Positions 5,204 to 63,684 of a stretch of 64,000 nt of DNA are shown here, one piece after another. This stretch comes from Squalus acanthias (taxonomy: Eukaryota): positions 186,682,001 to 186,746,000 of the forward strand of contig CM059427.1 in NCBI GenBank assembly GCA_030390025.1, given 5' to 3'. The notes below the pieces were generated by a model, which saw nothing but the letters and a program-made list of their open reading frames with translations, was not told the DNA's origin and searched no databases. Position numbers and translations under genes: made by a program. How positions within the stretch are numbered: position 1 is the first letter of the stretch; every line of letters starts with the position of its first letter.

Positions 5204-5223
5204 ACTACTCTCTCGCTACCAGT

Positions 5224-5241: not shown

Positions 5242-5246
5242 TTTCC

Positions 5247-8365: not shown

Positions 8366-8453
8366 ATGTGGCTACGATTTTTCTGCAGCAAAATGCCAGC
8401 TGGTTTGATGTTCAGTTTCTTTGTGTTTCTACTTCCATCTGTTTTCACACAAA
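8366..8453 (+). CDS. Signal-peptide exon, [29 protein letters not shown]
   Basis: Acceptor ttcttacag ends at 8343, ATG at 8366, hydrophobic core, donor A|gtaagt at 8454 (phase 1). Confidence 0.8.
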
Positions 8454-11400
8454 GTAAGTGCCTTATTTCCACCAATCACATTCATATTGTTTTACTTTAT
8501 CATAGTGTTTACTGAATTCACACACCTAGTATTCAGCAAGCAAGGAGGGCTTTATTTTCCTGTCCCTGCTCCTTTAAACAGGGGGTACAGTTTCTGCTTT
8601 GGGCACCATCGGCGATTCTGGCGTAACATTTTTTTCTCGAGTTTCCGTTCAAACTCATTTGCATATCGGCGAAAGCAAAATCTGCCCTGAAGCAGCGCAA
8701 TTGGGCAACATTTTAAAACGTCATTTTTTTTTTAAGTTGCTTTAAAAAGTATTCCTTGATATATTTAAGAGTGGTAACTCGGTGCAGTTTGCTTAATACA
8801 GCTGGAAATGGGTTTAACAAAAAATAAGCATTTTAAATCACAGTATCGAAGCCAGCTGTGAGTAATCCGATTTTAAATTATCAAAATTTGGGGAACTGTA
8901 GTGAGTTCCTTATAAAAAATCATCATTCAAAATCATTCAACAAGATACCTATTAGTGTCCTTATGCACAAAAGTTCCAGCTTATTTGTTGGAGCCTCCTC
9001 GAAGGCCTGCAAATGAGCACAATGAGTGGAAACTCCCAATGTTGATTAATTCATCCTGGGGGCGTGGCCAGGTTTGTGGGTGGGGCCAGCTTCCAGCACG
9101 ATGGTTTTAAAAGTAACGCAAAAGATCGCGGAAACTCTAGATCTGTTGAACGCAATTTCCGCTTAAAATTCTGCGATCTTTTGCACCGTTTACGCCGATA
9201 TCGGAGAAATCGTGCCGAAAAAAGCAGCGTGATCGAGCGGAAACACCAGGCCGCTGTGTAAGTTCACTTTTCAGAGTCCAACAGTGGAACAACTTAATAA
9301 AATGAAAAATGTTAGCAGATTTCTCATTGCTCTTCAATTCCTTTTCCCGATCTATCTATTAATCTCTCTATCTGTCGATACATCTACTCTTGCATGTAGC
9401 AAACTTCCATCAGAGCATTTTCTGTTTTCTATGATGTTATATTTGATCATTCAACAGCTTAACAGATTGCATGTGGTATAGAATGGGTCAAAAGTAATAA
9501 CAATATTAAAATGTTAATAAATGTTAAAATTAGGAATTATTGAAAATCACTTTTTGTGTTCGAGGCTGTGCAACATATAAAAGTTACAGTTGGGTAAAAC
9601 ATCATTTGAAAAGGTTTGAAGGTTTGTCGCTGATCCTCACTTCGGGTCACATCTTGGTTTAGTGTCCAAAGGTGTTTAAACATCACTGTGAATACAGTGT
9701 GCACAGAGCCATTGTGGTTTTGGTAATTGTGATGTGAGCTGCTATTTAATCAAGACTTACAAACACATGGGATTTACTGCTTTCGATCACTTCCCTTATG
9801 ACAATGTAGATAGAATAATGGTTACAATGAAGATTAGTTTAGTGTTACCCCTGAAATGAAGGAAGATAATGATTCAAAGGTGGAAATGTAGTCCAGGGAA
9901 TGATAACGATGAACTATTGACTGAATGATGTGACCACTGTCACCAGAGGCCACCTGGAAGTATCCAAATGCATTAACGTTAAATTTCACCATCACAACCA
10001 CAGTTGTCACCTTTCACAGATAAGGCAAAGCACCTGGTGGAAAGAGGCTGCAAGTCAGGTTCCAAGAGCTGGTTTATCTCTGTCACGGTGTCTTATCAGA
10101 CAAGGGGGGAGGATGCAGGAACTGGCTGATCGCTGCCCACCTCAGGAAACCCCATCAAAGGACAAACGGGGTGGAGACCCGACGTAACCGTATCCTGCAT
10201 CAATTTCACTCCCCGAGCTCCACCTTGATAATTCCCCCTGCAGACCAGGAGTCGGGAGGAGATTTGGAGCCTTTATTTTCTGTAACAAGAAATTTAGCCA
10301 TGACCTCTCTTTTTATTTTGATTACTTTTTGTAATAATAATGTATGTTACATAGAATTACAAAATATTTTACAGCACAGAAACATCTCCCTCATGTGCCT
10401 ATCTATGTTCAGAAAGCTCTGGTAATAGATACACAGAATATCTACTGGAAGTGCTGTGTTTTTCCCTGTAACCGTGCCTGCAGTGAAGGTGACATGATAT
10501 AATGCATTCTCCTCACGTATTAGTGCTAAATTATTGCCTTCTCTGGACTGAACTCCTCAATGAAGGATCTTCTTGGGATTGTAATGGGAGAGGATTTCAC
10601 TCTCCCTTCTTGCCCAATTTTGGATAGATTGTGGTCGGCAGCGGCAGAAAGTGGGGATGAGGATCCGGCGGGCTGCTCCCTGCAGATTGTCGTCACTTCA
10701 CTGAATATATGGACCCAAATATGGAGAGATTTATTCAAATTGTGTGGAGAGGGCAAGTGTTATCAGATGTTACATTCACCGTCATTACTGCCATAACAAT
10801 GCTGGAACATAAGGGACAGCAGCATGTTCCCGGAATCTAGTGTTGCGTTGGCTGGTGGGAGGGGATTTCAATTTCAAACATCTATCTGAAGCAAAGCAAT
10901 TGATCATGATCAAAGCAGTTTGATCCCTCCCTCTCCCACGAGTCCTGCTGGGAGCCCACAATAATTATCGAAATTATGCTGATTGTAAGGGTTTGCGTGC
11001 GTGTCTCTCAGCCTGTGAGATTCGCGCGGCTCTGTGCAGCCTGTATGTCAGTGCGGGTTTAGGCCTTGTTGCCTGTTCTGGTCTCCAGCCAGTCTGGGAA
11101 CACTAGACACACCTGTGAGTGGTTCGAATCACTCGCCCTTACGGTTCTAGACACTGGACTTAGATGCGAGAGCAGTAATGGAGATGAAACTCATGTAGAC
11201 TCGGTTGAATGGTACGAAATGGAAAAATCTTTATTGCATAATATTTAAGATTACGAAATACATGTCATAAGCACAGATTAATGACAGTACAATCTTACAC
11301 GCAGTTATGTAGCTAATTCTAGGGAAACGAGGAACGAACGACACACCGTAAATGGGGGCACACATTACAAGTATCCTTAATACTTAAACCCTCCCCTATC

Positions 11401-14400
11401 AATATCTGTCCTAGCTAGATTCGTAGGATTCGAGACTCATGCTCACCACTCGTGATAACTCGGAGAAATTCCGAATAGCTGATCGGATGTTTTCACCGCA
11501 GCACCCACGTGTCGATCAGGGGGTCTCCTGGCCCCACTTGTTTACTTGCTTCTGCTCCGGCTAGCAGGCTGGAACGTCTGTTGTTATGAAGATCTGTGTT
11601 GGTTGGTTTCACGTACCAGTCAACACTTAAGAGAATAATCTCTCAGTGTCCGTCATGAGGATCTGCCCTGATGGGTTTCACAGATCAGTCAATATCTCAA
11701 AGAAGAATCTTCCGGGGTCCATTCTTTAAAGTTCAAAGAAGTCTTCCTGGCAAGGAGAAATGTCTATTCGACCTACAGGCGCGGTCGGGGCTTACTGACC
11801 GTGGCGCTAAGTATGGTCTTCGTCTCTTCTCATCTCATCTCATCTCTTCTCGGGCCTTTGGTTCCGATGCCGGTTACCAACACAGGTCTTCCTGACACGA
11901 CACGAGGTAGATCCGAACGGATCACAAAGTTCAACAGTCTTTTAAAAGAGACACCAGGCAAGCAGGAACAAAACGGCGAGTCAAGAACACAGGAGCAGCC
12001 ACGAGGATGAACACCAGCAAGATAAGAGGATAAGAGAAAAATGGACGGTTTGGGACTTGCAATTATAGTGCAAAATCTTCCGTTTCCCGCCCAACCTTAA
12101 TGTCTTTTCTTTTGTTTGGGTTTGGCGCTCAAATGTCTTGTATAGGTGATCTCCGTTTTTAATGGGTTTCGGGGCTACTCGTAAATGTCTGAGTACCTGT
12201 TAATATTTCTCCCATTGTTAAATCGGTCGGTGTTCTCCCTGGAGGGGTTTTGGGGCTTCCAAGTGTTTTCTGTAACTACCCGCTAACGGCTCTCTCATCG
12301 TAGAGTCGTTGGGATTTTACATTTTAATGTCTTTGGATGGGCCCTTGATTACTTGGTACAATAGCCTTTATTCGTACCCGGGAGACCGATTTCAGTATCT
12401 ATGTGTATACTGCAAACCCATGATGTCTCGTGTATTATCTTCAATGTGCTGAATCTTAATCGATCTTGCACAAATGTTTATTGGAACGCCATCTTGTCTG
12501 TCTGTCGAAAAGTCTAGAATGTTCCGCCACGAGGTGCGGCGGCCATTTTACAGGCTGCTTGTGTCCACTTTGAAAACCTGACAGCATTCTGCTGAAATAA
12601 AGCTGTTTGAACGAAACTATGTGTTTTCTCCTTATTTATAAAATCGCGATATATTGCGAATTCTACATGATCTCAGGAGATTCCCCAGGGATCACGGTTT
12701 GGGAAGACAGACGGGCACGGAGTCTGTCACACTGACCTACAGGCAATTGGAAAATCCTGCCTCCCTTTGTTATCGGTAATCCTGTGGGTAGCCTGGTCAC
12801 TGGTGGTCCAGGAGAACCAACAATGTACTGGGCATTGCACAAGAGGAGGGGAGATCACTTGTAGAGATCGCTGACCTCATTTTTGAGCCTGAAGTGATAT
12901 GACTGCACCAGTACTGTATTTAGTTTTAGGAGAATACTGATTATTGTGACGGTATTTCAGGTTTCTTAACAATATGGGAGTAATGATTCCCCTTCCACAC
13001 TCCCAGTAAATGCTGGAAATACGTATTGTGAAATTGGACACTGCTGGCCCACGAGGTCAGAGTGCAGTGGCAGAAATTCACCCTCTAATGTCCTAAAGTA
13101 TCAGTGGATTAGGCCAGATTATTCCAGACAGTCAGCTCTTCACCGGGGTTTGTATGTGTCATTGCTTAATCCGTTGTATATAAAAAATATGACTGTAAAT
13201 AAATGAAGTCCAATATTAATCATTACAAACATGGGATTAAGTAGTTGTCATTTAAATATTTAAATATTTACATTGTTCCTCTTTCTAACAGGAAAACCAA
13301 ATCATATTTATTTTTTGGATAAGCGAGATGACTTTCAATTAAACGGACCAGACAATCCTGGGAATGGCCCTGTTGTCTGGGAATGGAAACCACACTCAGG
13401 GCAAGAAATCCAGCGGCTGGTTACTTTTCACAAAAGGAGTTCGGGCTGGTGGGACGCACAATGGAACTATCACTATAGAAACAGCGACTTGTACCGGAAT
13501 ATAGAATGGAATTATTGGTCCATTAATCTGAGAATTAGAAAACCCACATTTAATTTTGCGGGATCGTTCATCTTGACTCAAACACAGCCGAGTAATAAAA
13601 TCCTGAAACAGTATGAAATATTTGGGATCAAAGGTGAGTGGGACAAAGTCTAGAAAAGGAACAATAAAATGATTCTCCGTAAATAATTTCATGTGTAATG
13701 ATGAGAGATTGCCAGGATCACGTGAGATTTATATCACCCAGTGCAGAGAGCATCTCTCATTAAAATAACCAGGGGAAAGATTTTGTTCATTGTTTCTCCT
13801 GAAATGGTCAACATGAGTAAAAACATTTCGACAATTTCACCAGAAATAGCAAACCAAGTAATCTACCCCACAGAGAGTATTATGGTCTGTACACTGGCAC
13901 ACTCTCTGTCAGATGTACTGAATTTTGTTACCAACAATAGATCCCTTGTAGTAATGGGCCTCAGCGCGATGGGACAGGAATAAGATGGGACAGGAATAAG
14001 ATTGGCCAGAGTCACTGCTCCTGATTGCTATCCAGTGAACCTGTTAGATGTGTCACTTGGTTGAGGTCCCAGAGGATGTCAAGTGTCCCTGGAACTCGTA
14101 CTATGACAAGGAGTTAACACCTTCAGGAAAGCAAGAAGAACATGGCAGCGAAAAAGAAATACATTGGGGGGAATTTTAACCCCAAAAAATGGTTGGCTTG
14201 GGGTCGGGTGGGAGGTTACAGAGTTAAAAATCTGAATCCTGGCCCCAACTCGCCTCCAACCCGCCCACTTCTGGTTTTAACGGAGGTGGGACGGGGGTGG
14301 GCGGGGGCAGCTAACCTGCTCGCAGGAGGTGAGTTCGCACTTTTAATATTCTAATGGTGTTGGGTGCCTCATAGTGATCCACAATTTTAAATTTAACTGT

Positions 14401-17400
14401 GGGCTCGTGGAACCCGCCAGCGAAAGGGTGACGAGGACTGCTGGATCCAGGGTTTCTGCCTCGCCACCCGCCCGCGATCGGACCCCTCCCCCCGACCCTA
14501 CCGATCTCCAACCCAACCTCCGACAACCCCCCCCACGAGACCACTGATCTCTGATCGTGCCTCCTACCTTCTGACCTCCCCTCCGGCCTTCCGACCTCCC
14601 CCCTCCAGCCTTCCGATCTCTCTCTGATCTCCAATTCCCTCTCCGGCCTTCCGACCTCCCCCCTCCAGCCTTCCGATCTCTCTCTGATCTCCAATTCCCT
14701 CTCCGGCCTTCCGACCTCCCCCCTCCAGCCTTCCGATCTCTCTCTGATCTCCAATTTCCTCTCCGGCCTTCTGACCTCCCCCCTCCAGCCTTCCGATCTC
14801 TCTCTGATCTCCAATTCCCTCTCCGGCCTTCCGAACTCCCCCCTGCAGCTTTCCAACTGTCCTCTGATCTCCGATACTCCTTCTGGCCTTCCAACCTCAC
14901 AACTCTGGCCTTCCGACCTCCCCACTCCGGCATTCCGACAACCCCACCATTCCCTCCCTTCTCTCTGTGGTCTGGTGCATCAGGCCTTTACAGTCGAGCC
15001 TTTCCTTCTGGCTGGCTGCGGACGGGAGACAGACATTTTAAATGTTGATCGGGCCCTGTCGCTCAATTCAGTCCCGCCACTCCCTATCTGCCTCCCAAGT
15101 CTTTCCACCATCTACAAGGCACAAGTAAAGAGTGTGATGGAATACTCTCCACTTGCCTGGATGAGTGCAGCTCCAACAACACTCAAGAAGCTCGACACAA
15201 TCCAGGACAAAGCAGCCCATTTGATTGACACCTCATCCACCACCTTAAACATTCACTCCCTCCACCACCGGTGTACCGTGGCTGCAGTGTGTACCATCTA
15301 CAAGATTCACTGCAGCAACTTGCCAAGGCTTCTTCGGCAGCACCTCCCAAACCCGCGACCTCTTCCACCTAGAAGGACAAGGGCAGCAGGCGCATGGGAA
15401 AACCACCACCGCCAAGTTCCCCTCCAAGTCACACACCATCCTGACTTAGAAGTATATCGCCGATCCTTCATCGTCGCTGGGTCAAAATCCTGGAACTCCC
15501 TCTCTAACAGCACTGTGGGAGTACCTTCACCACTCGGACTGCAGCGCTTCAAGGAGATGGCTCACCACCACCTTCTCAAGGGCAAATAGGGATGGACAAT
15601 AAATGCTGGCCTTGCCAGCAATGCCCAGATCCCATAAGTAAATAAAAAAAAAAAAAAATTCCGGCCATTGTATCTACACAAAAATATTTTAAAACATTTA
15701 GTATAAATAAATCAAAATCTTTAGTACCTGCCAACCAAGGATGCTGCTCAACAGCTGCACTTTCTGGTTGGTTGATGTGTGTAACATCTGAATGAGGCTG
15801 AGGTCATTGTCATATGTACTTGGTACAAAATATAATCCAATCCTGAAATGTCGAAGTGGCCAAAATATGATTGTGACTTTACTGGGCCTGGACCATTGCC
15901 CCTGAGGTGTTGGCCCAAACTGCACCAGAATGAGGTGACCATAACAGAAAGTCAACTCATTTACATTTGTTAGTGGCACTCATGGTACATAGTGCCTGGT
16001 ACACGGGGAATGTCACACGGGTCGGGCACCAGAGTGTTGGGCTCCAGCAGCTAATGGATGGCACCATTTTTTTGGCCTGACATTGGATTTAAAGTCCCTG
16101 TTGAAGATTTGATTCTTACTTGTCATGTTGTAGGTGGGACTGAAAGTCAGGGTGGGCATTTTTAGAACAAGCCTCTCCTGAAGTGCCATTCCTCATGGAC
16201 ACTCAATGATTGGAGCTCTGCTCAGGAGCATTTTGGGAGCCCACTCATTTAAATAACGTAATGACTGTTGACGTGGATTTTGTGCACAGGCTCCCAGTGC
16301 GTGTGTTGGGTGGTCTTACTGAAGTGTGCGAGGCACATTGAGAACAGAGTGGGACTGGAGCCTTCTCCATGTCTGATAATATGGGCGCTACATTTCCATC
16401 ACACCCTCCTCTGGTGAGATTCATCACCTGTCCATTGTGGTGTCGGCTTCCACAAATGTCATCCAAACCATGTAACCTTAACCTGACCCCGGATACTCCA
16501 GCAGGGTCAGGGGTAAAGGTCATCGGCCGCACTCTGGCTCATTCACGCTGGCAGAGCTGGACCGAGAATTTTCAGGCTCGCTGTGTTATTCTACTGATAA
16601 AATGCACTTGTGTGTAATCTGGCCTGACTCTTTAATGCAGCAAGGTACAAGTGCTGATGATGGGCACATCCTACGGTCAGTTAGAACCTAATCACTGGAT
16701 TGTACATGCCACTACTTACACTAAATCTTATTGATCTGTTTTTCACAGTTGAGTCAAGTCCACAGAGTGCTGTGGTGGGCAGTGACGTTACACTCAGCTG
16801 TACCATCTCCAAACTCTCAGATACAGTCAGTCTTCAATGGAAACAGAGAGACTCATCTCAGCAGAACAGGAGCAACACTGATCAGATCCGACTAAATAAC
16901 ACAGTCTATCTGATAGTCAAACATGTTGCAGTAGAGGATAAGGAGTTGTACGCGTGTGAAGTGCAGGAAAATGGATCCATTATTCTCACAGGAAAAGCAG
17001 ATTTTGACGTGGATCAGTGTAAGTGCAGTTACCTCACAGTAGATATTAAAGAGTTACTAATATAAAACTGTTACATATAAAGTGGAGTCATACATGTCAA
17101 CCATCAGCACTTCATGCTTACAGTCAGCATGTGGGGGCCTGGTGCACATATCAGCATTAAACAAAAAACTGGCCTCTCGCCCCTCAATGCCACTTCTAAC
17201 CGAGTTCTGCTGCTATTTGAAGTGATTCCAGCTGCTGCATACTCTAGGCTTCAAATAAGCATTCAGCTGGAGCAGGACTGAGGGAAGAGGGAAGGGCAGG
17301 GAATCAATGGCCATGAACGGAGAGGGAAGGATGGAAATGATGGCATTGTAGAGGAGAGATGGTGGGCAGAGGGAAATGACAGAGGCTGGGAGTGGGGCTT

Positions 17401-29400: not shown

Positions 29401-29967
29401 CCTCATCACTCTCATTCTAACTGAGGGCTCGTGCATTGTGAGCGCAAGAGCAGGAAACTCGAGGCTGCAGAGCCACTGGCCCGTATTATAATATATGTAA
29501 ATTAGCTCATTTGGGAACTGCACCGGTAGATCATGGGAAGAGACAAAGGGCTCGATTTTGCCAGGCCCGAGGAGGTGGGAATGGAGGCGTGAGGGGTGTT
29601 AAAATTGCAAACAATGGTGGGCGGGCCCGACTCCGCCTCCGAGCAATTTTCCCAAATGCGTGGTTTCTGATCCCGTCTCCGTCCCACCTCCAAGAGGCGG
29701 GATAGGCCCTTAAGGCCCTTAACAACCACTTAATTGTCTCTATAATCCCATTTTGAGAGACCTTTCTGATTTTAAGACTTTTCCGACGTGATGCACGCCT
29801 CCTCTGAAACACGACGGTGAACCCTGGCGGGAGCACACTTGGATTGCTGACTATCAGCTGCAGGTCCACTATTAAGAAGGAGATTTGATCAATCATCATT
29901 CTGGGGGAACTTTTAGCAGTCATAACCATTGTTGTGGAACTTTGGAGCCTGGAGCCTGGAGTAGGAG

Positions 29968-30013
<46 letters not shown>

Positions 30014-51000: not shown

Positions 51001-54000
51001 TTTTGTGACTGGAAACCTGTGTCCAGTGGTGTACCGCAGGGATCGGTGCTGGGTCCTTTGCTGTTTGTAGTGTACATTAATGATTTAGATATGAATGTAG
51101 GAGGTATGATCAGTAAGTTTGCAGATGACACGAAAATTGGTGGGGTGGTAAATAGCGAGGAGGGAAGCCTCAGGCTACAGGACGATATAGACGGGTTGGT
51201 CAGATGGGCAGAACAGTGGCAAATGGAATTTAACCCTGAAAAGTGTGAGGTGATGCATTTTGGGAGGACTAACAAGGCAAGGGAATACACAATGAATGGT
51301 AGGACCCTAGGAAGGACAGAGGATCAGATGGACCTTGGTGTGCATGTACATAGATCCCTGAAGGCAGCAGGACAGGTAGATAAGGTGGTTAAAAAGGCAT
51401 ATGGGATACTTGCCTTCATTAGCCGAGGCATCGAATATAAGAGCAGGGAGGTTATGATGGAGCTGTATAAAACGATAGTTAGGCCACAGCTGGAATACTG
51501 TGTGCAGTTCTGGTCGCCACACTACAGGAAGGATGTGATTGCATTGGATAGGGTGCAGAGGAGATTCACCAGGATGTTACCTGGGCTGCAGCGCTTCAGC
51601 TATGAAGAGAGACTGGACAGGCTGGGGTTGTTTTCCTTAGAGCAGAGAAGGCTGAGGGGGGACCTGATTGAGGTGTACAAAATTATGAGGGGCATAGATA
51701 GGGTAGATAGAAAGGAACTTTACCCCTTAGTAGAGGGGTCAATAACAAGGGGGCATAGTTTCAAGGTAAGGGGCAGGAGGTTTAGCGGGGATTTGAGGAA
51801 AAACTTTTTCACCCAGAGGGTTGTTGGAATCTGGAACTCACTGTGTGAAAGGGTGGTAGAGGCAGGAACCCTCACAACATTCAAGAAGCATTTAGATGAG
51901 CACTTGAAATGCCATAGCATACAAGGCAACGGACCAAGTGTTGGAAAATGGGATTAGAATAGACAGGCCTTGATGGCCAGCACGGACACGATGGGCCGAA
52001 GGGCCTCTTTCTGTGCTGTATAACTGTATGACTCTATGAATCTATGTATGGTGTTCGTGGTGAGGGCTGAAGAAGATGGCTTCGGTCTTCATATATTTAA
52101 CTGGAGGAAATTACAGCTCATCCAAGACTAGATGTTAGGCAAGTGATCTGACAGCACAGAGGCAGTGGAGGGATAGAGAGAAGTGGTGGAAAGGTAGAGC
52201 TGTGTTTCATCAATACAGATTAGCAAGCTGAGCAAATGTCTTCAGATGAAGATTTACTAGAATGGTACCAGGGGGATGAGGTTCTTCTGTTATGTGGAGA
52301 GTTTGGAGAAGCTGGGGCAGAGAAGGTTAAGAGGAGATTTGATGGAGCGGTTCAAAATCATGAATGGTTTTAATAGAGTAAATAATGAGAAACTGATTCC
52401 AGTGGCAAAAGGGTCGGTAACCAGGGAAGACAGATTTAAGGTGATTGGCGACCAGATGCAGCATGAGGAAACATTCTTTTACACAGCGAGTTGTTGTGAT
52501 CCCAAATTCACTGCCTGAAAGGGTGGTGGAAGCAGATTCAAGAGTAACTTTCAAAAGAGAATTGGATAAATACTTGAAGGGAAAATATTTACAGGATATG
52601 GGGAAAGAGCAGGGGAGTGGAACTAATTGGATAGCTCCACCAAAGAGCCGGCACAGACACGATGCACCGAATAGCCTCCTTCTGTGCTGTATCATTCTAT
52701 GGGCCTGAAATTTGGCTCCTTAGCGCCAGCTGTTTAGGCTGGTTTTGTGGAAAAAATGTCACCTGCCTCACTTCTGCCTATTGGTGAAACAGGCGTTAGG
52801 CTATTAACATATTCAAATAAGGGGCCTAACGCCTGCTTCTGCTCCCTCTGGCAAATTTACTTGCATCTGTGACAGTCAGTGCCAGCAATGTTTACTCCCG
52901 GGAAAACAAACATTAAACAGTGCCGAATGAAAAAAAGGTAAGTACTTACCATTGGCATCTCTGACCTCACTCCCGACTCCGAGCTTCAGGTCCTCTCTGA
53001 TCTCCCCCCAATGCAGCCCCGACCTCCAGGTCCCCCCGATGGCCCCGACCTCCCCCCGATGTTGTCCCCGAGTCCCGATCACCCCCCGCCGATCTGGCCC
53101 CGTGTCCCGACCTACCTCAGAGTCCTTGCTGGGTGTTCAGATGTTCAGCGTGTTCAGTGCTGGGCTGAACGCCACAATAATGATAATCAGCCGGCGGAAA
53201 CAAGTCCCGGTGCTGCCTGTGATCTTTTTACGGGTGCGAGTAAACCTCGCCCCGCGGAGCCACTCCCGTTTACGGCCTTATCGGATTTCTAGGCCAAAGA
53301 TTCTATGTTGCCGAGGAGCAGCATGTAGATGAGGAAGATGAGGGAGCCAAGGGGGACAAGTGGACAATGGCCCAAAAATTCGGCTGAGAACGGGTGAGTA
53401 CTCAGTGCGTACCAGGTCTCCTGTCAAATCTATGAATGAAAGATGGTCGGCTGCCATTGGCTCTCAATGGCCCACGTGATCCCAGGGGTCGCATCGCACT
53501 AACTGCGCCCCTGGGACATGCACACACTGCACGCCGGCCCTAGGGAAAGGCCCAGGACCCGAAGTTCCTGCGGGGGCAAACAAGGACGGCAGACACGGTA
53601 TGTGATATCGCGCGCGATCCTTACCCCCGCGGCAAGCCTCCGAGTCAAATTTCTGGGCCATTATCTGGGAAATGTTCATAGTCAGCACTAAGCACGGCTG
53701 GTCAGCATTTGTCTGACTGTGTCTGTTTGTAGAAAAAGGAAATTCTGAATGCAATAGTTCAGAAAGTTTATGGAAAGCTAAACTACACGTCATTGATCTG
53801 TTTTTGCAGTTGAGACAGATTCCCAGAGGCCTGTAATGGGCAGTGACATCACCCTCAGTTGTACCGTCTCCAGACGCTCAGATACAGTCAGTCTTCACTG
53901 GAAACCAAGAGACTCATCTCAGCAGAACAGGAGGAACAACACTGATGAGATCCATCTGAATAACACGGTCTATCTGATAGTCAGACACGTTGGAGCAGAA

Positions 54001-57000
54001 AATCAGAATTTGTACACATGGGAAGTGCAGGAAAATGACTCCATTGTTCTCACTGGAAACACAAATGTTGATGTGGATCAGAGTAAGTCCAGCGCTAGCT
54101 TGCAGTAGGTGTTAAATAGTTACTGATATAAAACTGTTACACACAAAGTACAGCGAGCACAGGCACCACTGTGGGCTTTTACTGCAGAATGTGGTCCTTG
54201 TTTTTGCCCTGGAACATGGGTGTAAATATAAAATGGTGACATTAAGAGCTGATGTAACCAACCAGGTGAACTCAATGGATTCATTTCGATTCACATGTAT
54301 GAATCAAAAAGAATAAAATCCCTCAATATATAAAAAGCAACTGCCATTCCAGTCTATCGGCCCCCGCTTGTGATCTGAACTGGATATTCGTGTCTATCGC
54401 AAGTGTCCTTTCTTAGTCTCTTTGAAGGCAGACTATAAAAAGCCTTTGGTGAGACAAGGCCAGAAATTAATTGTTAAACTGCTTTATCTCACAGCGAGTG
54501 ATAAATAATGAACACGATACAATTTGCCACACCAGTGGGTCAACGACTTGATTTAAACAATTGGGCAAGAAAGTTGTCGGTGTCACCGCAACTGGAGTTA
54601 AGGGCCGCTGAAAATGGCCGCAGCGCTAAGGAGAATAAATTCATCTGGGGGGCTGGAGATTGGTGGCACAGCACTAACCTTCCGTGCAGCGCCCCCTGGT
54701 GGTGTTAGTGGAGACCTCCTGAGGTGAAGTTCCCGTCCTGAAGTGGCGTTCGAGCTTCGCACCGCCTCTGGGAGCGAGGAATTGTGGGCCATTAAAAGGG
54801 CTATGAATTAAAGGGGCCATGCACTCAGAACTAATACAAATTAAAATGCAGTGAGAAAATGCAGTTTTCAGCCCTTACTGACTGTCAGAAAAAATATAAC
54901 ATTAAAAAGAAGTCCCAAATGTGATTGTTCAGCTCTTAAAGCTGAATTCCCTTCCGAACCTCAAAAAATAGGGAATCTGCTTCAGCACTAACACAAATAG
55001 TTCAGCAACCTAGGGAAGGGGCACCCAGCGTCTTGCATGCAGCACTCCAGCTTTGTGCAGGGGATTAACACTGCAAGACAGCTCCTCTAACCATGGGCCA
55101 GGAGACCCTCCAGAAAGTAGGATGAGGAACTACATCACCGAGGCAACACTGCCAGCAGTGTCACCCCCACCACCTGGCTCCAGTGCCGAAGGATGCTTCA
55201 TGACCTCAGACCACTGGTCAAGGTCAGTAAATGTATCTTCAAAAGCCCTCTCCTACCAACTGCAGCACCAGCCTCACACACTGCTCAATGCACGACTCCC
55301 CTCTCAATCACTCACCTACCAACAATCAAGTCAGATTGACGATGCACCCTTTGATGGACCTGCCTGTTTGCTTCTGTCTCTCTCTTTGTTTTATCTTCTT
55401 CTGTTAACAACCAGAGGGGACCAGATGTGCCCAACACAATGGGTATGAGGCGTTTATTGACAATCGATTGCTGAGACAGTTTAAAAAATTGATTATCTAC
55501 AGTCCACGGGGAAACAGCATCACTTTGACGGGAGCCATTTTTGGTGCAGATGGACTTTGTAGCACAACCCGGCGTTTAAACAATAGGCAGCCTGGGCCGG
55601 CAGCCAGTGTATCCGGGTCCCAGCTGATTTCCCTGTCCCAATGCTGCACTCCCAGCTGGCTTATGCCAGGAGGGCGCTGAATGGCCCTGTGGGAATTCAG
55701 AACATCTGTATCTCAGCAGCTATATAAATCTAACACCTTGTTTCCTGTCTCTCTGTTGCAGGTTTATATGAAAAGAGTTACACACTTTATCGGTCAGACA
55801 CAGATCACAGTGAACTCTCCCTTATTTGTGAAGCTAAGTCTGAGTACATTAAAAGTAACTGGACTTGGAGGTCACGTCATTTTCAGAATCAAGAGAATGA
55901 AATAGCTTCTACTTTCAGATCTAAGCCTATCGAAGTAAACAGGACCTACTTTGGGAGTCGACTGGTGCCCACAGTGGGAAATCTTAATGGCAAGAACTTC
56001 AGTGTGAGGATTGTCCCCGTACTGTTTGAAGATGCAGGAGTTTACACTTGTTCTCTGGGGTTATTTAATTATGTGACCATTAAACTAATCACAGTTAAAG
56101 GTAGGAGACAGAATGTTGCAGGTGTTTTCAATGATAAAGTCGGGTAGAGTTTCCGCTTTGGGCACAATCGGCGATTCCGGCACAAATTGCGCCCAAAACT
56201 GCGCCCGTTTTGAAAATTGTTTCCCCCCCACCCCCCGAGGTTCCACTCAAACTCATTTGCATATCACCAAACACAAAATCTGCCCTGAACCAGCGCAATT
56301 GGTCAGTGATTTAAAACGTAATTTCTTTCTGCTAATTTTGCTTTAAAAAATATTCTAGGCTACATTTAAGAATGGTAACTTGGAGCAGTTTGATTAATAC
56401 AGCTGAAAGTGGGTTTATCACAAAAAATAAGCATTTTAAATCACAGTATCGATCCGCCACCTGTGAGTAATGGATTTTAAATAACAGAATTGACGTTAAA
56501 AAATATACAGAACTATTTTCTCATTAGATTGGGGTACATTAGTCAGTTCCTTTTGTAAATTGAAAAAAAATTATTTCAAAACCTTTCAAAACGTACGTAT
56601 TCGTGTCCTTGCGACCAAAAGCTCCAGCTCCATTTTTGGAGCCTCCTCGTCGGCCTGCAAACGGGCGCAATTAGTGGAAACTCCCGATGGTGATTGGTTC
56701 ACCCTGTGGGCGGGGTCAGTTTTGTGGGCGGGGCCAGTTTTGTGGACGGGGCCAGATTTGTAGGCGGGGCCTGCTTCTAGCGAGATGTCTTTAAAACTAG
56801 CACAAAAGATTGCGGAAAATCGAGTTGCACGGAACACAATTTGCACTTAAAATTCCGCTGTCGTTTGCGTTGGTTCCGCCGATATCATAGAAACATCGAA
56901 ACATAGAAGATAGGAGCAGGAGTAGGCCATTCAGCCCCTCGAGCCTGCTCCGCCATTCAATGAGACCATGGCTGATCATCCAAATTCAGTACCCTGTCCC

Positions 57001-60000
57001 TGCCTTCTCTCCATATCCCTTGATCCCTTTAGTTTTAAGAAATATATCTAACTCCTTCTTGAATATATTTAATGAATTGGCCTCTACTGCCTTCTGTGGT
57101 AGAGAATTCCACAGGTTCACCACTCTCTGGGTGAAGAAATTCCTCCTCATCTCAGTCCTAAATGGCTTACCCCTTATCCTTAGACTGTGACCCCTGGTTC
57201 TGGACTCCCCGGCCATCGGGAACATCCTTCCTGCATCTAGTCTGTCTAGTCCTGTTAGAATTTTATAAGTTTCAATGAGATCCCCTCTCATTCTTCTAAA
57301 CTCCAGTGAGTACAAGCACAATCGACCCAATCTCTCCTCATACGCCATTCCTGCCATCCCGGGTATCAGCCTGGTGAATCTTCGCTGCACTCCCTCCATG
57401 GCAAGAACATCCTTCCTCAGATAAGGCGACCAAAACTGCACACAATACTCAAGATGTGGTCTCACCAAGGCCCTGTACAACTGCAGCAAGACATCCTTGT
57501 TCCTGTACTCGAACCCTTTCGCTACGAAGGCCAACATACCATTTGCCTTCTTAACCGCCTGCTGCACCTGCATGCTTACCTTCAGCGATTGGTGCACAAG
57601 GACACCCAGGTCTCGTTGCACTTCCCCTTCTCCCAATCTATTGCCATTCAGATAATAATCTGCCTTCCTGTTTTTGACACCAAAGTGGATAACCTTGCAT
57701 TTATCCACATTATATTGCATCTGCCATGCTTCTGCCCAATCACCCAACCTTTCCAAATCATACTGGAGTTTCTCGGCATCCTCCTCACGGTACACACTCC
57801 CACCCAGCTTTGTGTCGTCTGCAAACTTGGAGATATTACATCCAATTCCATCGTCCAGATCATTAATATATATTGTGAATAGCTGGGGTCCGAGGACCGA
57901 TCCCTGCGGTACCCCACTAGTCACCGCCTGCCACTCGGAAAAAGACCCATTTATTCCAACTCTTTGCTTTCTGTCTGCCAACCAGTTCTCTATCCAAGTC
58001 AATACCTTGCCCCCAATCCCGTGTGCCTTAACTTTACATGCTAATCTCTTATTTGGAACCTTATCGAAAGCCTTCTGAAAGTCCAAATACACCACTTCCA
58101 CTGGTTCTCCCTTATCCATTTTACCAGTTACATCCTCAAAAAATTCCAGTAGATTAGTCAAGCACGATTTGCCTTTTGTAAATCCATGTTGACTTTGTCC
58201 GATCCTGTCACTGTTTTCCAAGTGCTCTGCTATTATATCTTTTATAATGGACTCTAGCATTTTCGCCACTACCGATGTCAGGCTTACTGGTCTATAATTC
58301 CCCGTTTTCTCTCTACCACCTTTTTTGAATAGTGGGGTAACATTAGCTACCCTCCAATCCATGGGTACTGTTCCAGAGTCTATAGAATTTTGGACGAATT
58401 GTACCGAAAAAAACAACACAATGGGGTGGAAACTCCAGGACATTGTTTAAAATCTAAATGATTTTCTTCTTTACACAGTCACAGCTGAACCATCTGATGC
58501 AGTGACTGAGGGAGACACCGTTACCCTGACCTGCTCTGTCTCTGATGTCACTGAATCAATGAGACTTGTTTGGATCAGTAGTGATGGCAAAACTGTTGAA
58601 GAGAAAACTTTTAAGGACCAGAAGCAGGAAGAGGATTTATTACGGCTGATTATTCAGAAAGCTGATAGAGACAGAAGGAACTGGACATGTGTTTTGTTTC
58701 ATCAAAACACGCCCAGCGTTTTAATTCCATATTATCTGAAGGTTAACAGTAAGTGTCTCAGGTTTTTCACACTTAACCTCCATAGAAAGTTCTTGTCACT
58801 CACTGCTCTTTTATTATGATAACCTCTTCCTTTTCAGATCCTATTGCACTCCACATTACTCAGAGTTCAGTCATAGGTGTTCACATATAAACAATTTAAC
58901 ATCAAAAATCAAACTATACAATCAAAGCAATAGAGAGGAGCTGAAGAGGAGAATTTGTTTTTATATCTTTCGGGTCCATTACACTCCTGTAAGGAGTCTT
59001 TTAAATGTTAAATCCCCTCCTGGCCAGTGTAATAAGACGAGATGCCAGTAACAGAATGGTTTTTCTTGCATCCAGTGTTGCTATGGTGGGTAATGATGGG
59101 AAATGTGACTCATGATGTCACTCTGTCCCTGCCACTCATTTGAATATGACCAATAATTGACCAATCTCACTTCTGGCAGGAAATCCTGGAAGTGGTGGTG
59201 ATTGGCCGGGGAATGATTGGCCGGGGAATGATTGGCCGGGGATTGATTGGCCGGGGATTGATTGGCCGGGCAATGATTGGCCGGGGATTGATTGGCCGGG
59301 GAATGATTGGCCGGGGAATGATAGAAAAGGCTGTCTAGCCAACTTCTTGCACCAGATCCATGTGAAATGGGACTGGGAAGGGAGCAGAAGTAACTTGCTC
59401 GTTCTTCACTCCGATAATTTTAACTTTATTGCTCTGGAAGCTACAACTCCAGGTTCTTGTTTTGGAGTAAATTTGCCTCTGAATTGCTCCCAGCAACAGA
59501 CTGGGGAATCTGAGTGCAAAGGACTCTGACACTCAGTTGCATCAATTTATATTGGGCAACTAACTTCAGGGACAACTATCTGAAAACCCATACAGGAAAT
59601 TCCAGATGCAGTGCTAATCAGGTGCAAAACAATAGCACAGGATATGCATCCATTGTTCCTGTGCACAGTGCCCATTCTTCAGGTGCTATTTTGTTGCTAA
59701 TTCCAGTCGCATCTCCCCTTAAATGTTTGGGAACATTTTTCTTTTGTTATCCCATCTTTTACATCATGTCCTACCTGAAACAGTGTAGACAGACAGCCTA
59801 TTTCCAGGTCTCTATCAAAGGGACCCTCCAACCTGCATGAGGTGAGTTGTTGCCTCTGTATCTTTTCATCCTCCCAGGGGAATGCACATCCACACTTTTC
59901 CTACCACCTTCTGAAACCTGGACTGAGATCGTATATTTGGTTTGTGGCACATCATGGACACAAACTCATTCCATGGTAGTGTCTTACTGCTGTAATATGC

Positions 60001-60789
60001 ATTGTGGTGTCATTCCTGAAGAAGCATTGTCATGGAAGCATTGTCATGGATTAATTCTTGCTAAATATTATGGCCAGGAAGATATTATACAAATTTTCTT
60101 TCCTAATGTTGTGCCAGTTTTCTCCTCTTTCCTCTTTTCCTCCCATGTTGGTGCTGATCTTGACTTTGTGCGATAGTGTAAAATGTGTAACAGTGAGTCG
60201 ACAGCCCGTTTTACATCTTTCTCCATTTTTATTTCCATTTGTTTTACACTATCGCACACTACCTCATTGAGTGCAGTTCTCATTCAAGTAGCCATTATTC
60301 AAGTACAAGCCTAGACAATGAGGATCATTTGCCTATTGTACAGCAGGAAGCATCACAGCTGAATCGGATTCTTTACTTACCAGTCATCTGCACACATCTC
60401 CTCTCCAGAAGGAATCACTGGATTGGAACCAGGAAGTAGAACCCTATGTGACTTTTTTTTTTCCCTGTCCCTAACTGAAGGGACAGTTGCAGCACTCCAG
60501 TGTTCCTGAGTGAGGTCAGTTAACTTGGATTAGGAATTAAACTGAGGACCTTCTGGCCTGTATGGCTTAATGGTAAATCAGACAGTAGGGTTATCTACTG
60601 GGTCATTAGGGAAGCTTAATTTTTTTTTAGAAAAGTTAATCTATAAACTAAATGTGAAATCTATGCTTATTCGTCTGACAGATGTTTACACTTTTAAACA
60701 TACCAATGTCGTTCTTTTCGGGAGTCTGGCTCTTCTCATCATCATTATCCTGGCAGTGGTGCTGTGTCTAAGAAGGAGCAAGCTTGCAG
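8366..60789 (+). CDS. Spliced type-I membrane IgSF receptor with eight Ig domains, (V-C2-V-C2)x2; CD4/LAG-3/G6F-like/DICP-type architecture. join(8366..8453,13292..13633,16749..17018,26776..27114,27961..28230,38311..38655,53810..54082,55762..56100,58479..58748,60682..60789,...)
   Basis: Ten exons with pyrimidine-rich AG acceptors and GT donors, all phase 1, no stops (2644 nt). Signal peptide, Ig motifs (B-strand Cys, C-strand Trp, DAGVYxC, NWxC) and a hydrophobic TM followed by RRSK. The cytoplasmic exon is uncertain. Confidence 0.88.
8582..9252. mobile_element. Non-autonomous DNA transposon (MITE), same family as 56142-58441
   Basis: Shares long stretches with 56142-56880 (aaactcatttgcatat, aaatcacagtatcga, gtggaaactccc); imperfect terminal inverted repeats. 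Confidence 0.65.
10984..12667 (-). mobile_element. Solo LTR related to the 5247-6962 LTR, in intron 1
   Basis: TGTAA...CTACA termini, a 4-bp target-site duplication TGAT (10980-10983 and 12668-12671), and diverged colinear similarity to the proviral LTR. Confidence 0.9.
13292..13633 (+). CDS. Ig domain D1 exon (V-like, no cysteines, Trp-rich)
   Basis: ctaacag| acceptor, |gtgagt donor; [19 protein letters not shown]; paralog of 38311-38655. Confidence 0.88.
14570..14930. repeat. 60-bp pyrimidine-rich minisatellite (about 5-6 copies)
   Basis: ctccggccttccgacctccccctccagccttccgatctctctctgatctccaattccct repeats at 14581, 14641, 14701, 14761 and 14821. Confidence 0.95.
15090..15658 (+). mobile_element. 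CR1-group LINE 3' end with poly(A) tail
   Basis: [17 protein letters not shown]...HHLLKG, then 3' UTR and an A-run at about 15644-15658. Confidence 0.85.
16749..17018 (+). CDS. Ig domain D2 exon (C2-type)
   Basis: tttcacag| acceptor, |gtaagt donor; VTLSC, LQW, LYACEV. Confidence 0.9.
17436..17680 (+). pseudogene. Relic third copy of the D2/D6 exon 3' part plus downstream intron
   Basis: Reads [29 protein letters not shown]. The donor is mutated to tt, and the following intron sequence matches the flank at 54083-54230. Confidence 0.8.
17901..21283. mobile_element. Internally deleted PIF/Harbinger transposon with a nested CR1
   Basis: GGCC-type ends; transposase 5' and 3' remnants (19960-20180) homologous to 34062-35250; Myb-like exon remnant on minus strand (about 20760-21010). 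Confidence 0.75.
17961..19480 (-). mobile_element. CR1 LINE (APE and RT fragments, internally deleted)
   Basis: [34 protein letters not shown]; catagaat-type tail at 17961. Confidence 0.92.
21730..22080 (-). mobile_element. Degenerate L2-type LINE 3' fragment
   Basis: [11 protein letters not shown] motif, similar to 61045-61460. Confidence 0.55.
22525..24089 (+). pseudogene. Harbinger Myb/SANT-like DNA-binding protein; spliced 22525-22764, 23108-23267, 23424-about 24089; frameshifted in the last exon
   Basis: PRFDDDSL...W..IAEEV...[13 protein letters not shown]; [17 protein letters not shown]; basic C-terminus RRTRKRK; GT-AG junctions. Confidence 0.85.
24450..25572 (-). pseudogene. Harbinger (HARBI1-like) DDE transposase, N-terminus disrupted
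   Basis: ORF 24485..25246 has VDCTHV, NVQLVC, HDSFIL, GDKGYP and [15 protein letters not shown]. Confidence 0.92.
26776..27114 (+). CDS. Ig domain D3 exon (V-type)
   Basis: cgcag| acceptor, |gtagga donor; [27 protein letters not shown]. Confidence 0.92.
27159..27923. mobile_element. Harbinger-type MITE in the D3-D4 intron
   Basis: TIRs GGCCCAAAAATTC / GAATTTCTAGGCC, TSD ATT; a deleted sister copy lies at 53369-53659. Confidence 0.85.
27961..28230 (+). CDS. Ig domain D4 exon (C2-type with WxC)
   Basis: tttacacag| acceptor, |gtaagt donor; VILTC, LVW, NWIC. Confidence 0.92.
28377..29110 (+). mobile_element. CR1-group LINE 3' fragment with A tail
   Basis: [11 protein letters not shown]...HHLLKG, then an A-run at 29100-29109. 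Confidence 0.8.
29970..30041. repeat. (GTA)n(GTG)n compound microsatellite
   Basis: Directly visible; explains the poly-Val ORF. Confidence 0.97.
31104..31835. mobile_element. Harbinger-type MITE, same family as 29548
   Basis: Perfect 13-bp TIRs GGGCTGGATTTTG / CAAAATCCAGCCC, TSD TAT, and shared internal gatgacatcatcagaggcgactttcagactg. Confidence 0.92.
32110..32585. repeat. CpG-rich irregular tandem repeat (GAAC/ACGA units with recurring attggaactta)
   Basis: attggaactta at about 32170, 32293, 32374 and 32495; gcgcgcacttagacaaatg occurs twice. Confidence 0.8.
33515..37705. mobile_element. Degenerate PIF/Harbinger transposon: transposase on + (34062-35250), Myb-like gene on - (37449-35520)
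   Basis: Frameshifted [24 protein letters not shown]; minus strand FSDASL...WLEIAEE...RTWVQC. Right end poorly defined. Confidence 0.88.
38311..38655 (+). CDS. Ig domain D5 exon (paralog of D1, no cysteines)
   Basis: ttcttgcag| acceptor, |gtaagt donor; [24 protein letters not shown] shared with D1. Confidence 0.9.
38915..39082 (-). mobile_element. L2-type LINE fragment copy A, which resumes at 48138
   Basis: Similar to 52046-52200; gaggcagtggagggat is continued by tgagactggtggtggagagg at 48138. Confidence 0.7.
39083..43330 (-). mobile_element. Near full-length CR1 LINE (ORF1 Zn-finger/esterase from 43057; degenerate ORF2 APE-RT)
   Basis: catagaat tail at 39083; [41 protein letters not shown] in several frames. 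Confidence 0.93.
43330..48090. repeat. 12-bp satellite CCTCTCGCCG(C/T)T, roughly 390-400 units
   Basis: Directly visible, with 9- and 15-bp variant units and a 315-bp higher-order duplication (ctcact markers at 45115/45430, 45256/45571, 45301/45616). Confidence 0.98.
48323..52045 (+). mobile_element. CR1 LINE (5'-truncated ORF1 SGNH esterase, ORF2 APE-RT with few disruptions)
   Basis: GDSILRG, HIGTND, DGLHLN; NARS, ITETW, YYRPP; intact RT 50575-51957; CR1 3' tail. Confidence 0.95.
50478..50569 (-). mobile_element. Short Penelope-like fragment with a hammerhead-ribozyme core, inserted in CR1
   Basis: 10-bp direct repeat CAGGGGAGGT (50468-50477 and 50567-50576). The minus strand reads CTGAGGA-AGGAGC-loop-GCTCC-GAAA-GCTT-GTG. 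Confidence 0.7.
52245..52700 (+). mobile_element. CR1 LINE 3' fragment
   Basis: RRLRGDL, FTQRVV and a CR1 3' UTR. Confidence 0.8.
52701..53295. mobile_element. Harbinger-type MITE
   Basis: Ends GGGCCTGAAATTT and GATTTCTAGGCC. Confidence 0.55.
53369..53659. mobile_element. Deleted copy of the 27159-27923 MITE
   Basis: Same left end ggcccaaaaattcggc and near-identical right part (caggtctcctgtcaaatctatgaatgaaagatgg). Confidence 0.85.
53810..54082 (+). CDS. Ig domain D6 exon (paralog of D2; F-strand Cys replaced by Trp)
   Basis: tttttgcag| acceptor, |gtaagt donor; ITLSC, LHW, LYTWEV. Confidence 0.9.
55762..56100 (+). CDS. Ig domain D7 exon (paralog of D3, V-type)
   Basis: ttgcag| acceptor, |gtagga donor; [18 protein letters not shown]. 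Confidence 0.92.
56142..58441. mobile_element. MITE (8582 family) in the D7-D8 intron, interrupted by a CR1
   Basis: Similar to 8582-9252; ends gggtagagtttcc and ggaaactccaggac. Confidence 0.7.
56886..58393 (-). mobile_element. 5'-truncated CR1 LINE with uninterrupted RT frame
   Basis: ORF 56986..58443 has [37 protein letters not shown]; catagaaa tail. Confidence 0.95.
58479..58748 (+). CDS. Ig domain D8 exon (paralog of D4, C2 with WxC)
   Basis: tttacacag| acceptor, |gtaagt donor; VTLTC, LVW, NWTC; about 67 of 90 residues identical to D4 by hand count. Confidence 0.92.
59200..59319. repeat. 15-bp minisatellite GATTGGCCGGGGA(A/T)T x8
   Basis: Eight units counted directly. Confidence 0.97.
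60682..60789 (+). CDS. Transmembrane exon, [36 protein letters not shown]
   Basis: ctgacag| acceptor, |gtaagg donor, phase 1; uncharged hydrophobic run of about 21 aa followed by RRSK. Confidence 0.88.
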
Positions 60790-61044
60790 GTAAGGTATGC
60801 AAATTGCTGCAACCAATTTCAGGTTTCATACATGTAATATAATGTGAATGTGGCACCTGATTCCAAAAATGAGTAATAATAATTATATCCTTGTTTAATA
60901 TTAAACAATATAATCCATTAGTATTAGATAAACGGATGTGTTTGTCTTTCTATGTGTCAAATATTCTAGGAAGGCAATAGTTCCTGAACTGCTGAATGAT
61001 GGGAGTTCTACACTAGGCTCTGCAGCTGGTCCCAGATAAATAAC

Positions 61045-61460
61045 AACAACCTGCATTGATATAGCACCTTTAAAGTAGTAAAATGTCCCAAGGCACCTAA
61101 CAGGAGCGTTATCAAACAAAATTTGACACCGAGCCACATAAGGAGATATTAGGACTGGTGACCAAAAGCTTGGTCAAAGAGGGAGGTTTCAAGGAGCCTC
61201 TTAATGGGGAGAGATAGGTAGAGAGGCAGAGAGGTTTGGGGAAGGAATTCCAGAGCTTAGGGCCTAGCCAGCTGAAGGCACGGCCGTCAGTGATGGAGCG
61301 ATGAAAATCAGGGATGCGCAAGAGGCCCGAATTGGAGGAGCGCAGAGATCTCGGAGGGTTACAGGACTGGAGAAGGTTACAGAGATGGAGAGGAGCAAAG
61401 CCATGAAGAGATTTGAAAGCAACAATGAGAATTTTAAAATCGAGGCATTGCCGGACTGGG
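61045..61460 (-). mobile_element. L2-type LINE 3' end
   Basis: GRAFSWLGPKLWNSFP and an L2-like tail ending in (GTT)n. Confidence 0.75.
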
Positions 61461-62701: not shown

Positions 62702-62849
62702 AGCTGCCACATTTCATACATTACAACAGTGACTATACTTTAAAACGTACTTCATTAGCTTTGAGACATGCTTAGGCCAAGAAAGGTGCTCAAGAAATGC
62801 AAGTCTTTCTGTACACCACAGACTACACTAAGAACACACTGAATCATTG

Positions 62850-63660: not shown

Positions 63661-63684
63661 GACACTATCAGGTCCTCACGATGT

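Follow-up and report, generated by a model that had tools for sequence, protein, structure and literature searches.

A probable eight-immunoglobulin-domain receptor gene with a doubled V-C2-V-C2 ectodomain in Squalus acanthias, and its unnamed family in cartilaginous fishes

The DNA considered here, called the window, is a stretch of 64,000 nucleotides (nt) from Squalus acanthias (assembly GCA_030390025.1, contig CM059427.1, positions 186,682,001 to 186,746,000 of the forward strand); positions given below are those of the window, counted from its first letter. Ten exons are located on its forward strand between 8366 and 60789. With a probability of roughly 0.8, they constitute one intact gene for a type I membrane receptor with eight immunoglobulin (Ig) domains, arranged as two consecutive V-C2-V-C2 cassettes (D1-D4 and D5-D8), in which D5-D8 originated by an old tandem duplication and which is a member of an unnamed multigene family in cartilaginous fishes, with CD4 and LAG-3 as distant kin.

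The ten exons represent the 5' and main part of the gene (Table 1). All of them are open and are bordered by AG acceptors and GT donors, the leader beginning at its ATG. Since the leader measures 88 nt and the lengths of the remaining exons are all multiples of 3, every junction is of phase 1. A preliminary description of this DNA, made from its letters, had proposed ten phase-1 exons in one open frame, and its coordinates turned out to be exact, including those of the 28230/38311 junction between D4 and D5. The N-terminal motif of the leader is common to the leaders of the relatives P0096, P0099 and P0115. The leader exon and the transmembrane (TM) exon are each present as a single copy in the 64-kb window, and searches with family proteins added no exon, in agreement with the earlier statement that no second leader or TM exon lies between D4 and D5. 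Thus, tblastn searches of the window with 162 family proteins, and with ten C-terminal parts at loose thresholds, revealed no further family exon, although a very divergent small exon could escape them. A TM exon carrying a lysine was looked for between D4 and D5 and not found. The TM exon ends in phase 1, indicating that the tail continues past the window; no tail exon was detected in 60790-64000, the C-terminal parts of family proteins being included among the queries.

Table 1. Exons of the receptor gene and a related relic in the window.
Feature	Position	Strand	Description
Leader	8366-8453	+	ATG at 8366, GT donor at 8454; start codon and signal peptide; 88 nt, phase-1 end
D1	13292-13633	+	V-like Ig, Cys-free, Trp-rich, first V type (Va); 342 nt
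D2	16749-17018	+	C2-type, strand F with an ordinary YxC (YAC); above cut-off with Pfam Ig_2 (33.7 bits)
D3	26776-27114	+	V-like, canonical Cys pair, second V type (Vb); Pfam V-set 17.1 bits, below cut-off
D4	27961-28230	+	C2-type, strand F with WxC (WIC); above cut-off with Pfam ig (26.1 bits)
D5	38311-38655	+	V-like, Cys-free, D1 paralog, conserved among species
D6	53810-54082	+	C2-type, strand-F Cys replaced by Trp (YTW)
D7	55762-56100	+	V-like with Cys pair, D3 paralog
D8	58479-58748	+	C2-type, WxC (WTC), D4 paralog; Pfam ig 33.9 bits
TM exon	60682-60789	+	Uncharged membrane span followed by basic stop-transfer; phase-1 end
D2-like relic	17437-17678	+	Dead 3' half of a D2/D6-type exon (17437-17595) and intron start, about 420 nt after D2

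Tests on the window were carried out with single exons only, and those on several domains at a time with public proteins of other species. When each exon was compared with Pfam, only generic Ig families were matched: D2, D4 and D8 exceed the curated Ig cut-off, D3, D6 and D7 remain below it, and D1 and D5 give no Pfam Ig match. The latter two contain no cysteine. Pfam being silent, the Ig nature assigned to D1 rests on an AlphaFold (AF2) model of its exon, predicted from an alignment of 32 rows with a predicted local distance difference test (pLDDT) score of 94.1. In Foldseek searches this model resembles V-set domains with TM (template modelling) scores of 0.70-0.73, the top ones being those of 2B4/CD244, MPZL1, myelin P0 and NTB-A. 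The model and these fold matches suggest that D1 is a V-like Ig domain without disulfide.

The joint between the two cassettes was sought in public sequencing runs presumed to be RNA (the run type being a guess), ten of which contain a fraction of 0.04-0.33 of the words sampled from the D3-D4 stretch; exons make up 0.42 of the stretch used for this word sampling. Contigs of four runs (X1, X2, X4 and X10, from three studies) were aligned to 26700-28700, and the junction was read from the loose ends at the D4 donor. These contigs cover D3 and D4, with a depth that is zero at 26700-26766 and near zero at 28241-28374, as for spliced RNA. In X2 (by 54 further nt) and in X4 (by at least 255 nt; record 32 has 512 nt), contigs continue past 28230/28231 into 30 letters identical to 38312-38341, a string from the beginning of D5 with a single occurrence in the window. 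The two runs bear two organism codes and come from two studies. In two of the four runs, splicing therefore links D4 and D5 at the sites predicted. The preliminary description had named reads joining 28230 to 38311 as a check; they do join, but in contigs that are only 96-99% like the window. Since the contigs break inside 46 nt common to D4 and D8, the observed V-to-C2 joints, which lead from 27109 to 27959 over three intervening letters, belong to the D7/D8 type or are unassignable. In run X2, a loose end of 8 nt at 28232 resembles a D4-to-TM junction and hints at a four-Ig paralog or at a cassette-skipping isoform. A word-indexed protein search with the product of the D5 exon, aimed at short spliced pieces across the D4-D5 junction, had no match, a blank that carries no weight given the length filter of that search.

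The second cassette repeats the first one in the same order, and the earlier view of D5-D8 as paralogs of D1-D4 is borne out by nucleotide identities of 72% for D1/D5, 81% for D2/D6, 81% for D3/D7 and 83% for D4/D8 (blastn E values from 4e-61 to 3e-113). At the amino-acid level the same pairs share 54%, 67%, 70% and 74-76% identity, respectively. The paralogy had also been said to include the intron flanks. This holds within about 60 nt of the exons, where the flanks of paired exons are 62-77% alike, but not further out, where the likeness is 43-59%. Close to D2 there is also a relic (Table 1) that is 74% like 16926-17083 and 77% like 53990-54234. Its exon part, 17437-17595, contains stop codons and a frame break, and lies outside the transcript. 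This relic points to a partial tandem duplication. Because all exons are symmetric and of phase 1, whole cassettes can be duplicated or skipped with the frame kept; public isoforms without single domains do exist.

The window gene has many relatives. A profile of D3/D7 compared with 1.84 billion representative proteins yielded 68 matches with E<=1e-3, ten of them at E<=1e-30. One relative, XP_072120630 from the manta ray Mobula birostris (974 amino acids), shows the same succession of leader, eight domains, TM and tail. With this protein as the query, 64 proteins were retrieved at E<=1e-10; they all come from sharks and rays, and nearly all are called 'uncharacterized', apart from two 'obscurin-like' and one 'VCAM-1-like'. 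Four domain models built from the window exon pairs were then scanned over the 162 family proteins. The complete (V-C2-V-C2)x2 order was present in 30 of them, from 18 shark and ray species. Other layouts comprise four domains, eleven or twelve domains (Heptranchias, Hemitrygon and Carcharodon) and fifteen domains (Scyliorhinus canicula, with a doubtful model start). The closest relative found of the window gene is a protein of 1002 amino acids from Pristiophorus japonicus. The family is also present in the chimaera Callorhinchus, and more distant unnamed relatives occur in bichir, sturgeon, elopomorphs (eels and tarpon), a mormyrid, char and cyprinids. Many LOC numbers are found per species among the family proteins, which speaks for a multigene family.

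The window domains carry the signatures of this family, namely the domain order, a WEW-type motif in the first V, the strand-F Trp of D6 and D5 and the WxC of the second C2, and they cluster with their positional counterparts in 20 proteins of 18 species. Among the public models of other species, XP_072120630, the P. japonicus isoform P0096 and the nurse shark 'obscurin-like protein' AGQ17915.1 share the eight-domain order, the replacement of Cys by Trp in D6 and the TM type, with domains 72-96% identical to those of the window, but they are genes of other species or paralogs. Every relative that was looked up bears an automatic name ('uncharacterized', 'obscurin-like', 'VCAM-1-like' or 'CEACAM5-like'), as the earlier claim of an uncharacterised gene would have it. 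No published description of the family was found in the literature, although more shark CD4/LAG-3-like sequences may be given in PMC10768021 (supplementary files 2, 3 and 10). As far as these searches show, the family is thus publicly predicted yet unnamed and undescribed. The doubled ectodomain had been taken as the distinction of this gene. The gene does have eight Ig domains in two V-C2-V-C2 cassettes, but the doubling is old and common to 30 proteins of 18 species: the window gene is real, not unique, and the doubling is not special to it.

The age of the doubling was addressed with per-domain trees of 59-60 rows, drawn from 20 proteins with eight and 11 with four Ig domains and from 6-7 bony-fish outgroups, the window exons forming rows of their own. 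In three of the four trees a single branch sets the 21 second-cassette domains apart from the rest, with a support of 80 for Va, 93 for the first C2 (Ca) and 98 for Vb. The second cassette also shares derived residues. In 20 of the 21 second-cassette domains the strand-F Cys of D6 has given way to a Trp, whereas the Cys is kept in all 38 other domains of the same type; at the strand-F place of D5, Trp is found in 21/21. These three trees, together with the shared Trp residues, indicate that the doubling behind D5-D8 predates the split between sharks and rays, which is on the order of 250-300 million years old. Chimaera domains form a clade of their own regardless of position. Because they cluster by species and not by position, the chimaera repeats stem from a separate duplication. 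The cassette has been multiplied in eels as well, with 8 and about 20 domains in the Anguilla rostrata proteins P0144 and P0004, the chimaera case being P0167 of Callorhinchus milii. The eel and chimaera expansions indicate that the same block was duplicated several times independently.

The domains of the window gene differ in their degree of conservation. The best identity to other species reaches 89% for D5 (with the second cassette of Heptranchias), 96% for D6 (with Pristiophorus) and 89% for D8. D1, D3 and D7 are the most variable, with best identities to any relative of 72%, 77% and 74%, respectively, D1 being the lowest.

With respect to solved structures, CD4 and LAG-3 are the best relatives of the family by both profile and fold, in line with the preliminary description, which had placed the gene in a group with them. 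A profile of 20 four-Ig relatives compared with 177,635 sequences of the PDB retrieved human LAG-3 first (1.1e-13) and CD4 fifth (1.5e-10). The LAG-3 alignment spans the end of a V domain and the next C2, and it places the WxC of the family, found in D4 and D8 of the window, on the WxC of LAG-3 D2 and D4. A four-Ig relative from a sawshark, P0006, was modelled with AlphaFold (AF2), with a pLDDT of 81.6 and a predicted TM score (pTM) of 0.74. In this model, strands 132-147 and 336-350 cross the V/C2 borders, located at 143/145 and 347/348. A long strand running from strand G of the V domain into strand A of the C2 domain is typical of CD4, according to PMC10768021. The best Foldseek matches of the P0006 model are LAG-3 (7tzg with 5e-19, and 8dgg) and four-domain CD4 (7t0r and 1wio). 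When the C2 and D3/D7 profiles were compared with PDB sequences, the matches were only of a generic Ig kind, and no match to a CD4-specific Pfam family was obtained.

Two details of the kinship had to be revised. WxC in the C2 domains had been described as a feature common to this gene, CD4 and LAG-3. In CD4 and LAG-3, according to PMC10768021, strand F carries WxC in each of the two C2 domains (D2 and D4). In the family, however, only the second C2 of each cassette has it: the strand-F W is present in 58 of 60 second-C2 domains and in 0 of 59 first-C2 domains of the relatives, and in the window D2 has YAC and D6 has YTW. The presence of D1 on a single exon had been regarded as a difference from CD4 and LAG-3, but shark CD4 and LAG-3 also lack a D1 intron (PMC10768021, section 3.2), so this trait is in fact a likeness. 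Others are the V-C2-V-C2 order, the strands running from V to C2 in the P0006 model and the WxC of the membrane-proximal C2. The differences are that the window gene has eight domains instead of four, no WxC in the first C2 and no cysteine in D1 and D5.

Signalling was approached through 68 chondrichthyan relatives with a recognisable TM. An uncharged TM together with at least one consensus of the immunoreceptor tyrosine-based inhibitory motif (ITIM) is present in 48 of them and a charged TM in 18, the remaining 2 having neither. Ten of the 18 charged-TM relatives have a lysine in the TM, a short tail and no ITIM. Counted over all tails, the ITIM consensus occurs in 51/68 and YxN in 37/68. ITAM (the immunoreceptor tyrosine-based activation motif), Cx(C/H) and (F/Y)xxL(D/E) were each found in 0 of the 68 tails. 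Several proteins (P0006, P0007, P0020, P0100, P0126 and others) carry the lysine within a conserved TM motif and have short, ITIM-free tails; they look like activating partners. Some ray proteins combine an arginine in the TM with an ITIM tail. In the tail of P0125, residues 446-532 give a sub-threshold match to the Pfam family of the SHP2-interacting transmembrane adaptor, SIT (E 0.03; its score is 15.3 bits, the cut-off 27.6), which is a hint only.

The TM of the window gene is uncharged and is 76-83% identical to the TMs of the ITIM-tailed relatives P0096, P0005, P0125 and P0129. On these grounds, which are those of sequence likeness, we read the window gene as a putative inhibitory member of an undescribed family of paired receptors of the CD4/LAG-3/G6F-like kind. 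The earlier placement of the gene with CD4 and LAG-3 needs correction on one point: tails, copy number and charged-TM partners fit paired receptors of the innate type and not a co-receptor such as CD4 or LAG-3. Paired Ig receptors, such as those of the KIR, LILR, CEACAM and Siglec types, have fast-evolving tips, ITIM tails versus charged-TM partners, and clustered genes. By this comparison the working principle would be the same; the domain types and their order differ, and the comparison does not extend to kinship by sequence.

As to its own tail, ligand, signalling and cell type, we infer only the following. The fast-changing, disulfide-free D1, situated at the tip, would bind a putative ligand, and the conserved, membrane-proximal second cassette might serve as a stalk that sets the reach of the receptor. 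The uncharged TM would lead to a tail that, if similar to those of close relatives, may carry one YxN and two ITIM-type tyrosines. Engagement of the ligand would then be followed by tyrosine phosphorylation and by the recruitment of an SH2 phosphatase, and the cell, whatever its type, would be dampened. The sister genes with a lysine in the TM and a short tail would be the activating partners.

Several observations weigh against this overall picture of one intact, anciently doubled and inhibitory-type relative of CD4 and LAG-3. The contigs of the runs, although 96-99% like the window, show fixed differences from it (record 32, for instance, has 7 over 184 nt), and none of the contigs of the four runs carries the letters that the window has at 28086-28102. 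The fixed differences suggest that the contigs may derive from a sister species or from a close paralog, so that the D4-D5 splice, seen as it is in near-identical contigs, may have its source in a relative or a close paralog rather than in the window locus. The ratio of nonsynonymous to synonymous substitutions (dN/dS) between the cassettes is fairly high, 0.56-0.77; since high values are frequent in immune receptors, this carries little information. The Cb tree, that of the second C2, does not unite the second cassette in one group and needs three changes; as these are quick trees on about 90-114 columns, single forks are weak. NCAM1 came fourth in the PDB profile search (1.4e-11), which makes the margin of LAG-3 over generic Ig proteins modest. 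In Atlas, a look-up based on a language model, the scores of all neighbours lie between 0.95 and 0.97, with other Ig families at 0.95. Finally, the tail of the window gene lies outside the window and is inferred from relatives.

The Atlas scores bear on the idea that the gene is the cartilaginous-fish counterpart of the teleost G6F-like protein (G6fL), a thrombocyte collagen receptor, in an expanded and lengthened form. We consider this unlikely. The nearest named Atlas cluster is indeed 'g6f-like', with 0.97 for the tarpon relative and 0.96 for a shark four-Ig relative, but no alignment stands behind these scores and unrelated Ig families score almost as high, so the kinship to G6F is a lead only. 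According to PMC3528668, G6fL is encoded by a single gene for a collagen receptor of thrombocytes with four Ig-like domains, a TM and a tail in which YxN and an ITAM are split over two exons. A multi-Ig type I membrane protein with a YxN tail is what both have in common, given the frequency of YxN among the 68 relatives. However, G6fL signals by its ITAM, whereas the tails surveyed here are ITAM-free, and a single gene contrasts with a multigene family in which the cassette is doubled. Moreover, a word-indexed search with the tarpon protein led to 22 relatives, unnamed bony-fish proteins, none of them named g6f-like.

It has also to be considered whether the locus is silent or recently decaying, the transcripts coming from a close paralog or from another species. 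The fixed differences in all four runs and the lack of the window letters at 28086-28102 would be explained in this way, and a dead D2 fragment is present at 17437-17595. On the other hand, the ten exons are all open with consensus splice sites and each domain is 72-96% identical to its counterparts in other species, and the runs may simply be from another species or individual. We therefore regard a silent locus as distinctly improbable and keep to the reading of an intact gene.

A true third lineage of CD4/LAG-3, that is, a co-receptor or checkpoint binding class II molecules of the major histocompatibility complex (MHC), would agree with the best PDB matches by profile and fold, with the V-C2-V-C2 order, with the border-crossing strands and with the aligned WxC. 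It is nevertheless very unlikely. The first C2 never has the strand-F W in the 59 domains counted, the CD4-specific Pfam family is not matched, and the tails, which carry ITIM and YxN, lack the motifs that PMC10768021 gives for CD4 (Cx(C/H), in a tail of several exons) and for LAG-3 ((F/Y)xxL(D/E), in a single exon). According to the same paper, CD4 and LAG-3 are as a rule represented by one gene each, located side by side in a conserved region, and sharks already possess one of each (section 3.2), whereas this family has many genes per genome as well as charged-TM partners. No flanking gene that could indicate linkage to CD4/LAG-3 or to the MHC is visible in the window.

There is similarly only a slim chance that the family is the cartilaginous-fish form of the DICPs (diverse immunoglobulin domain-containing proteins). 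As described in bioRxiv 10.1101/2021.06.11.448072, these are clustered multigene receptors with a D1-D2 or D1a-D2a-D1b-D2b layout and with ITIM, charged-TM and other forms, so that the two families are alike in their multigene clusters, in the repeated two-domain unit and in having inhibitory and activating members. However, the DICP D1 and D2 domains are described there as keeping C23 and C104, most of them with extra DICP-specific cysteines, while D1 and D5 are Cys-free. In 60 relatives, too, the first V domains have residues other than Cys at the strand-B and strand-F positions, except for 2 cases of Cys at the F place in four-Ig forms. The preprint reports DICPs, linked to MHC genes, from teleosts, holosteans and coelacanth only; the term WxC has zero occurrences in that preprint, and no DICP cluster is found among the Atlas neighbours.

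That two adjacent four-Ig genes, or a gene and a pseudogene, were misread as one is highly improbable and largely refuted: although the D4-D5 intron is 10 kb long and full of transposons, four-Ig members exist and the X2 loose end at 28232 is like a D4-to-TM junction, no leader precedes D5 and no TM follows D4, the two exons are joined in contigs, and the same order recurs in 30 proteins of 18 species with second-cassette signatures in 20-21 of 21 domains.

The introns of the eight-Ig gene contain abundant mobile and repeated DNA. A 12-nt satellite of about 397 copies with 87% matches (43339-48084) fills 4.7 kb of the D5-D6 intron and is the source of very long sham open reading frames (ORFs) on both strands. 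Copies of long interspersed nuclear elements (LINEs) are located at 48229-51957 on the forward strand, at 56986-58443 on the reverse strand and at 17960-19480. One LINE copy contains a GDSL-esterase-like ORF followed by a reverse transcriptase, and another reverse transcriptase ORF ends 35 nt before the D8 acceptor. Transposons of the Harbinger type, with a Myb/SANT-like ORF and DDE_Tnp_4, are present at 22474-25246 in the D2-D3 intron and at 33975-37668 in the D4-D5 intron, partly in opposite orientation. Introns that do not correspond to each other share pieces: 27153-27926 (D3-D4) with 53363-53662 (before D6), and 8583-9209 (leader intron) with 56142-56893 (after D7). Contig depth runs into the thousands on 27169-27905 and 28375-28575, and such a very high depth suggests that the shared pieces are dispersed repeats; rearrangement as their source was set aside for this reason. 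The first part of the window, 1-6962, is richer in G and C than the remainder.

Cartilaginous fishes are the oldest jawed vertebrates with adaptive immunity, and little is known of innate or paired Ig receptors in them. The single locus described here is of smaller value, being one of many members with equivalent, though unnamed, public models. The family as a whole is large and has been kept across sharks and rays; in structure it comes closest to CD4 and LAG-3, which bind MHC class II, and it has inhibitory-type and activating-type forms. The V-C2-V-C2 layout is itself thought to have been made from V-C2 by exon-block duplication. The (V-C2-V-C2)n genes of sharks, rays and chimaera, together with their relatives in bichir, sturgeon, eel, tarpon and cyprinids, may be an old, undescribed receptor family beside CD4, LAG-3 and G6F that is still multiplying its cassette in the same manner, and it could be a paired system of the natural killer (NK) or myeloid type, possibly reading MHC-like ligands; this proposal is a tentative one, with the odds against it. 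If true, cartilaginous fishes would have in this family the paired receptor system, NK-type or myeloid, that has long been sought in them. The family offers a living example of how Ig receptors are lengthened by cassette duplication, and a concrete set of genes for the study of ligand, cell type and signalling.

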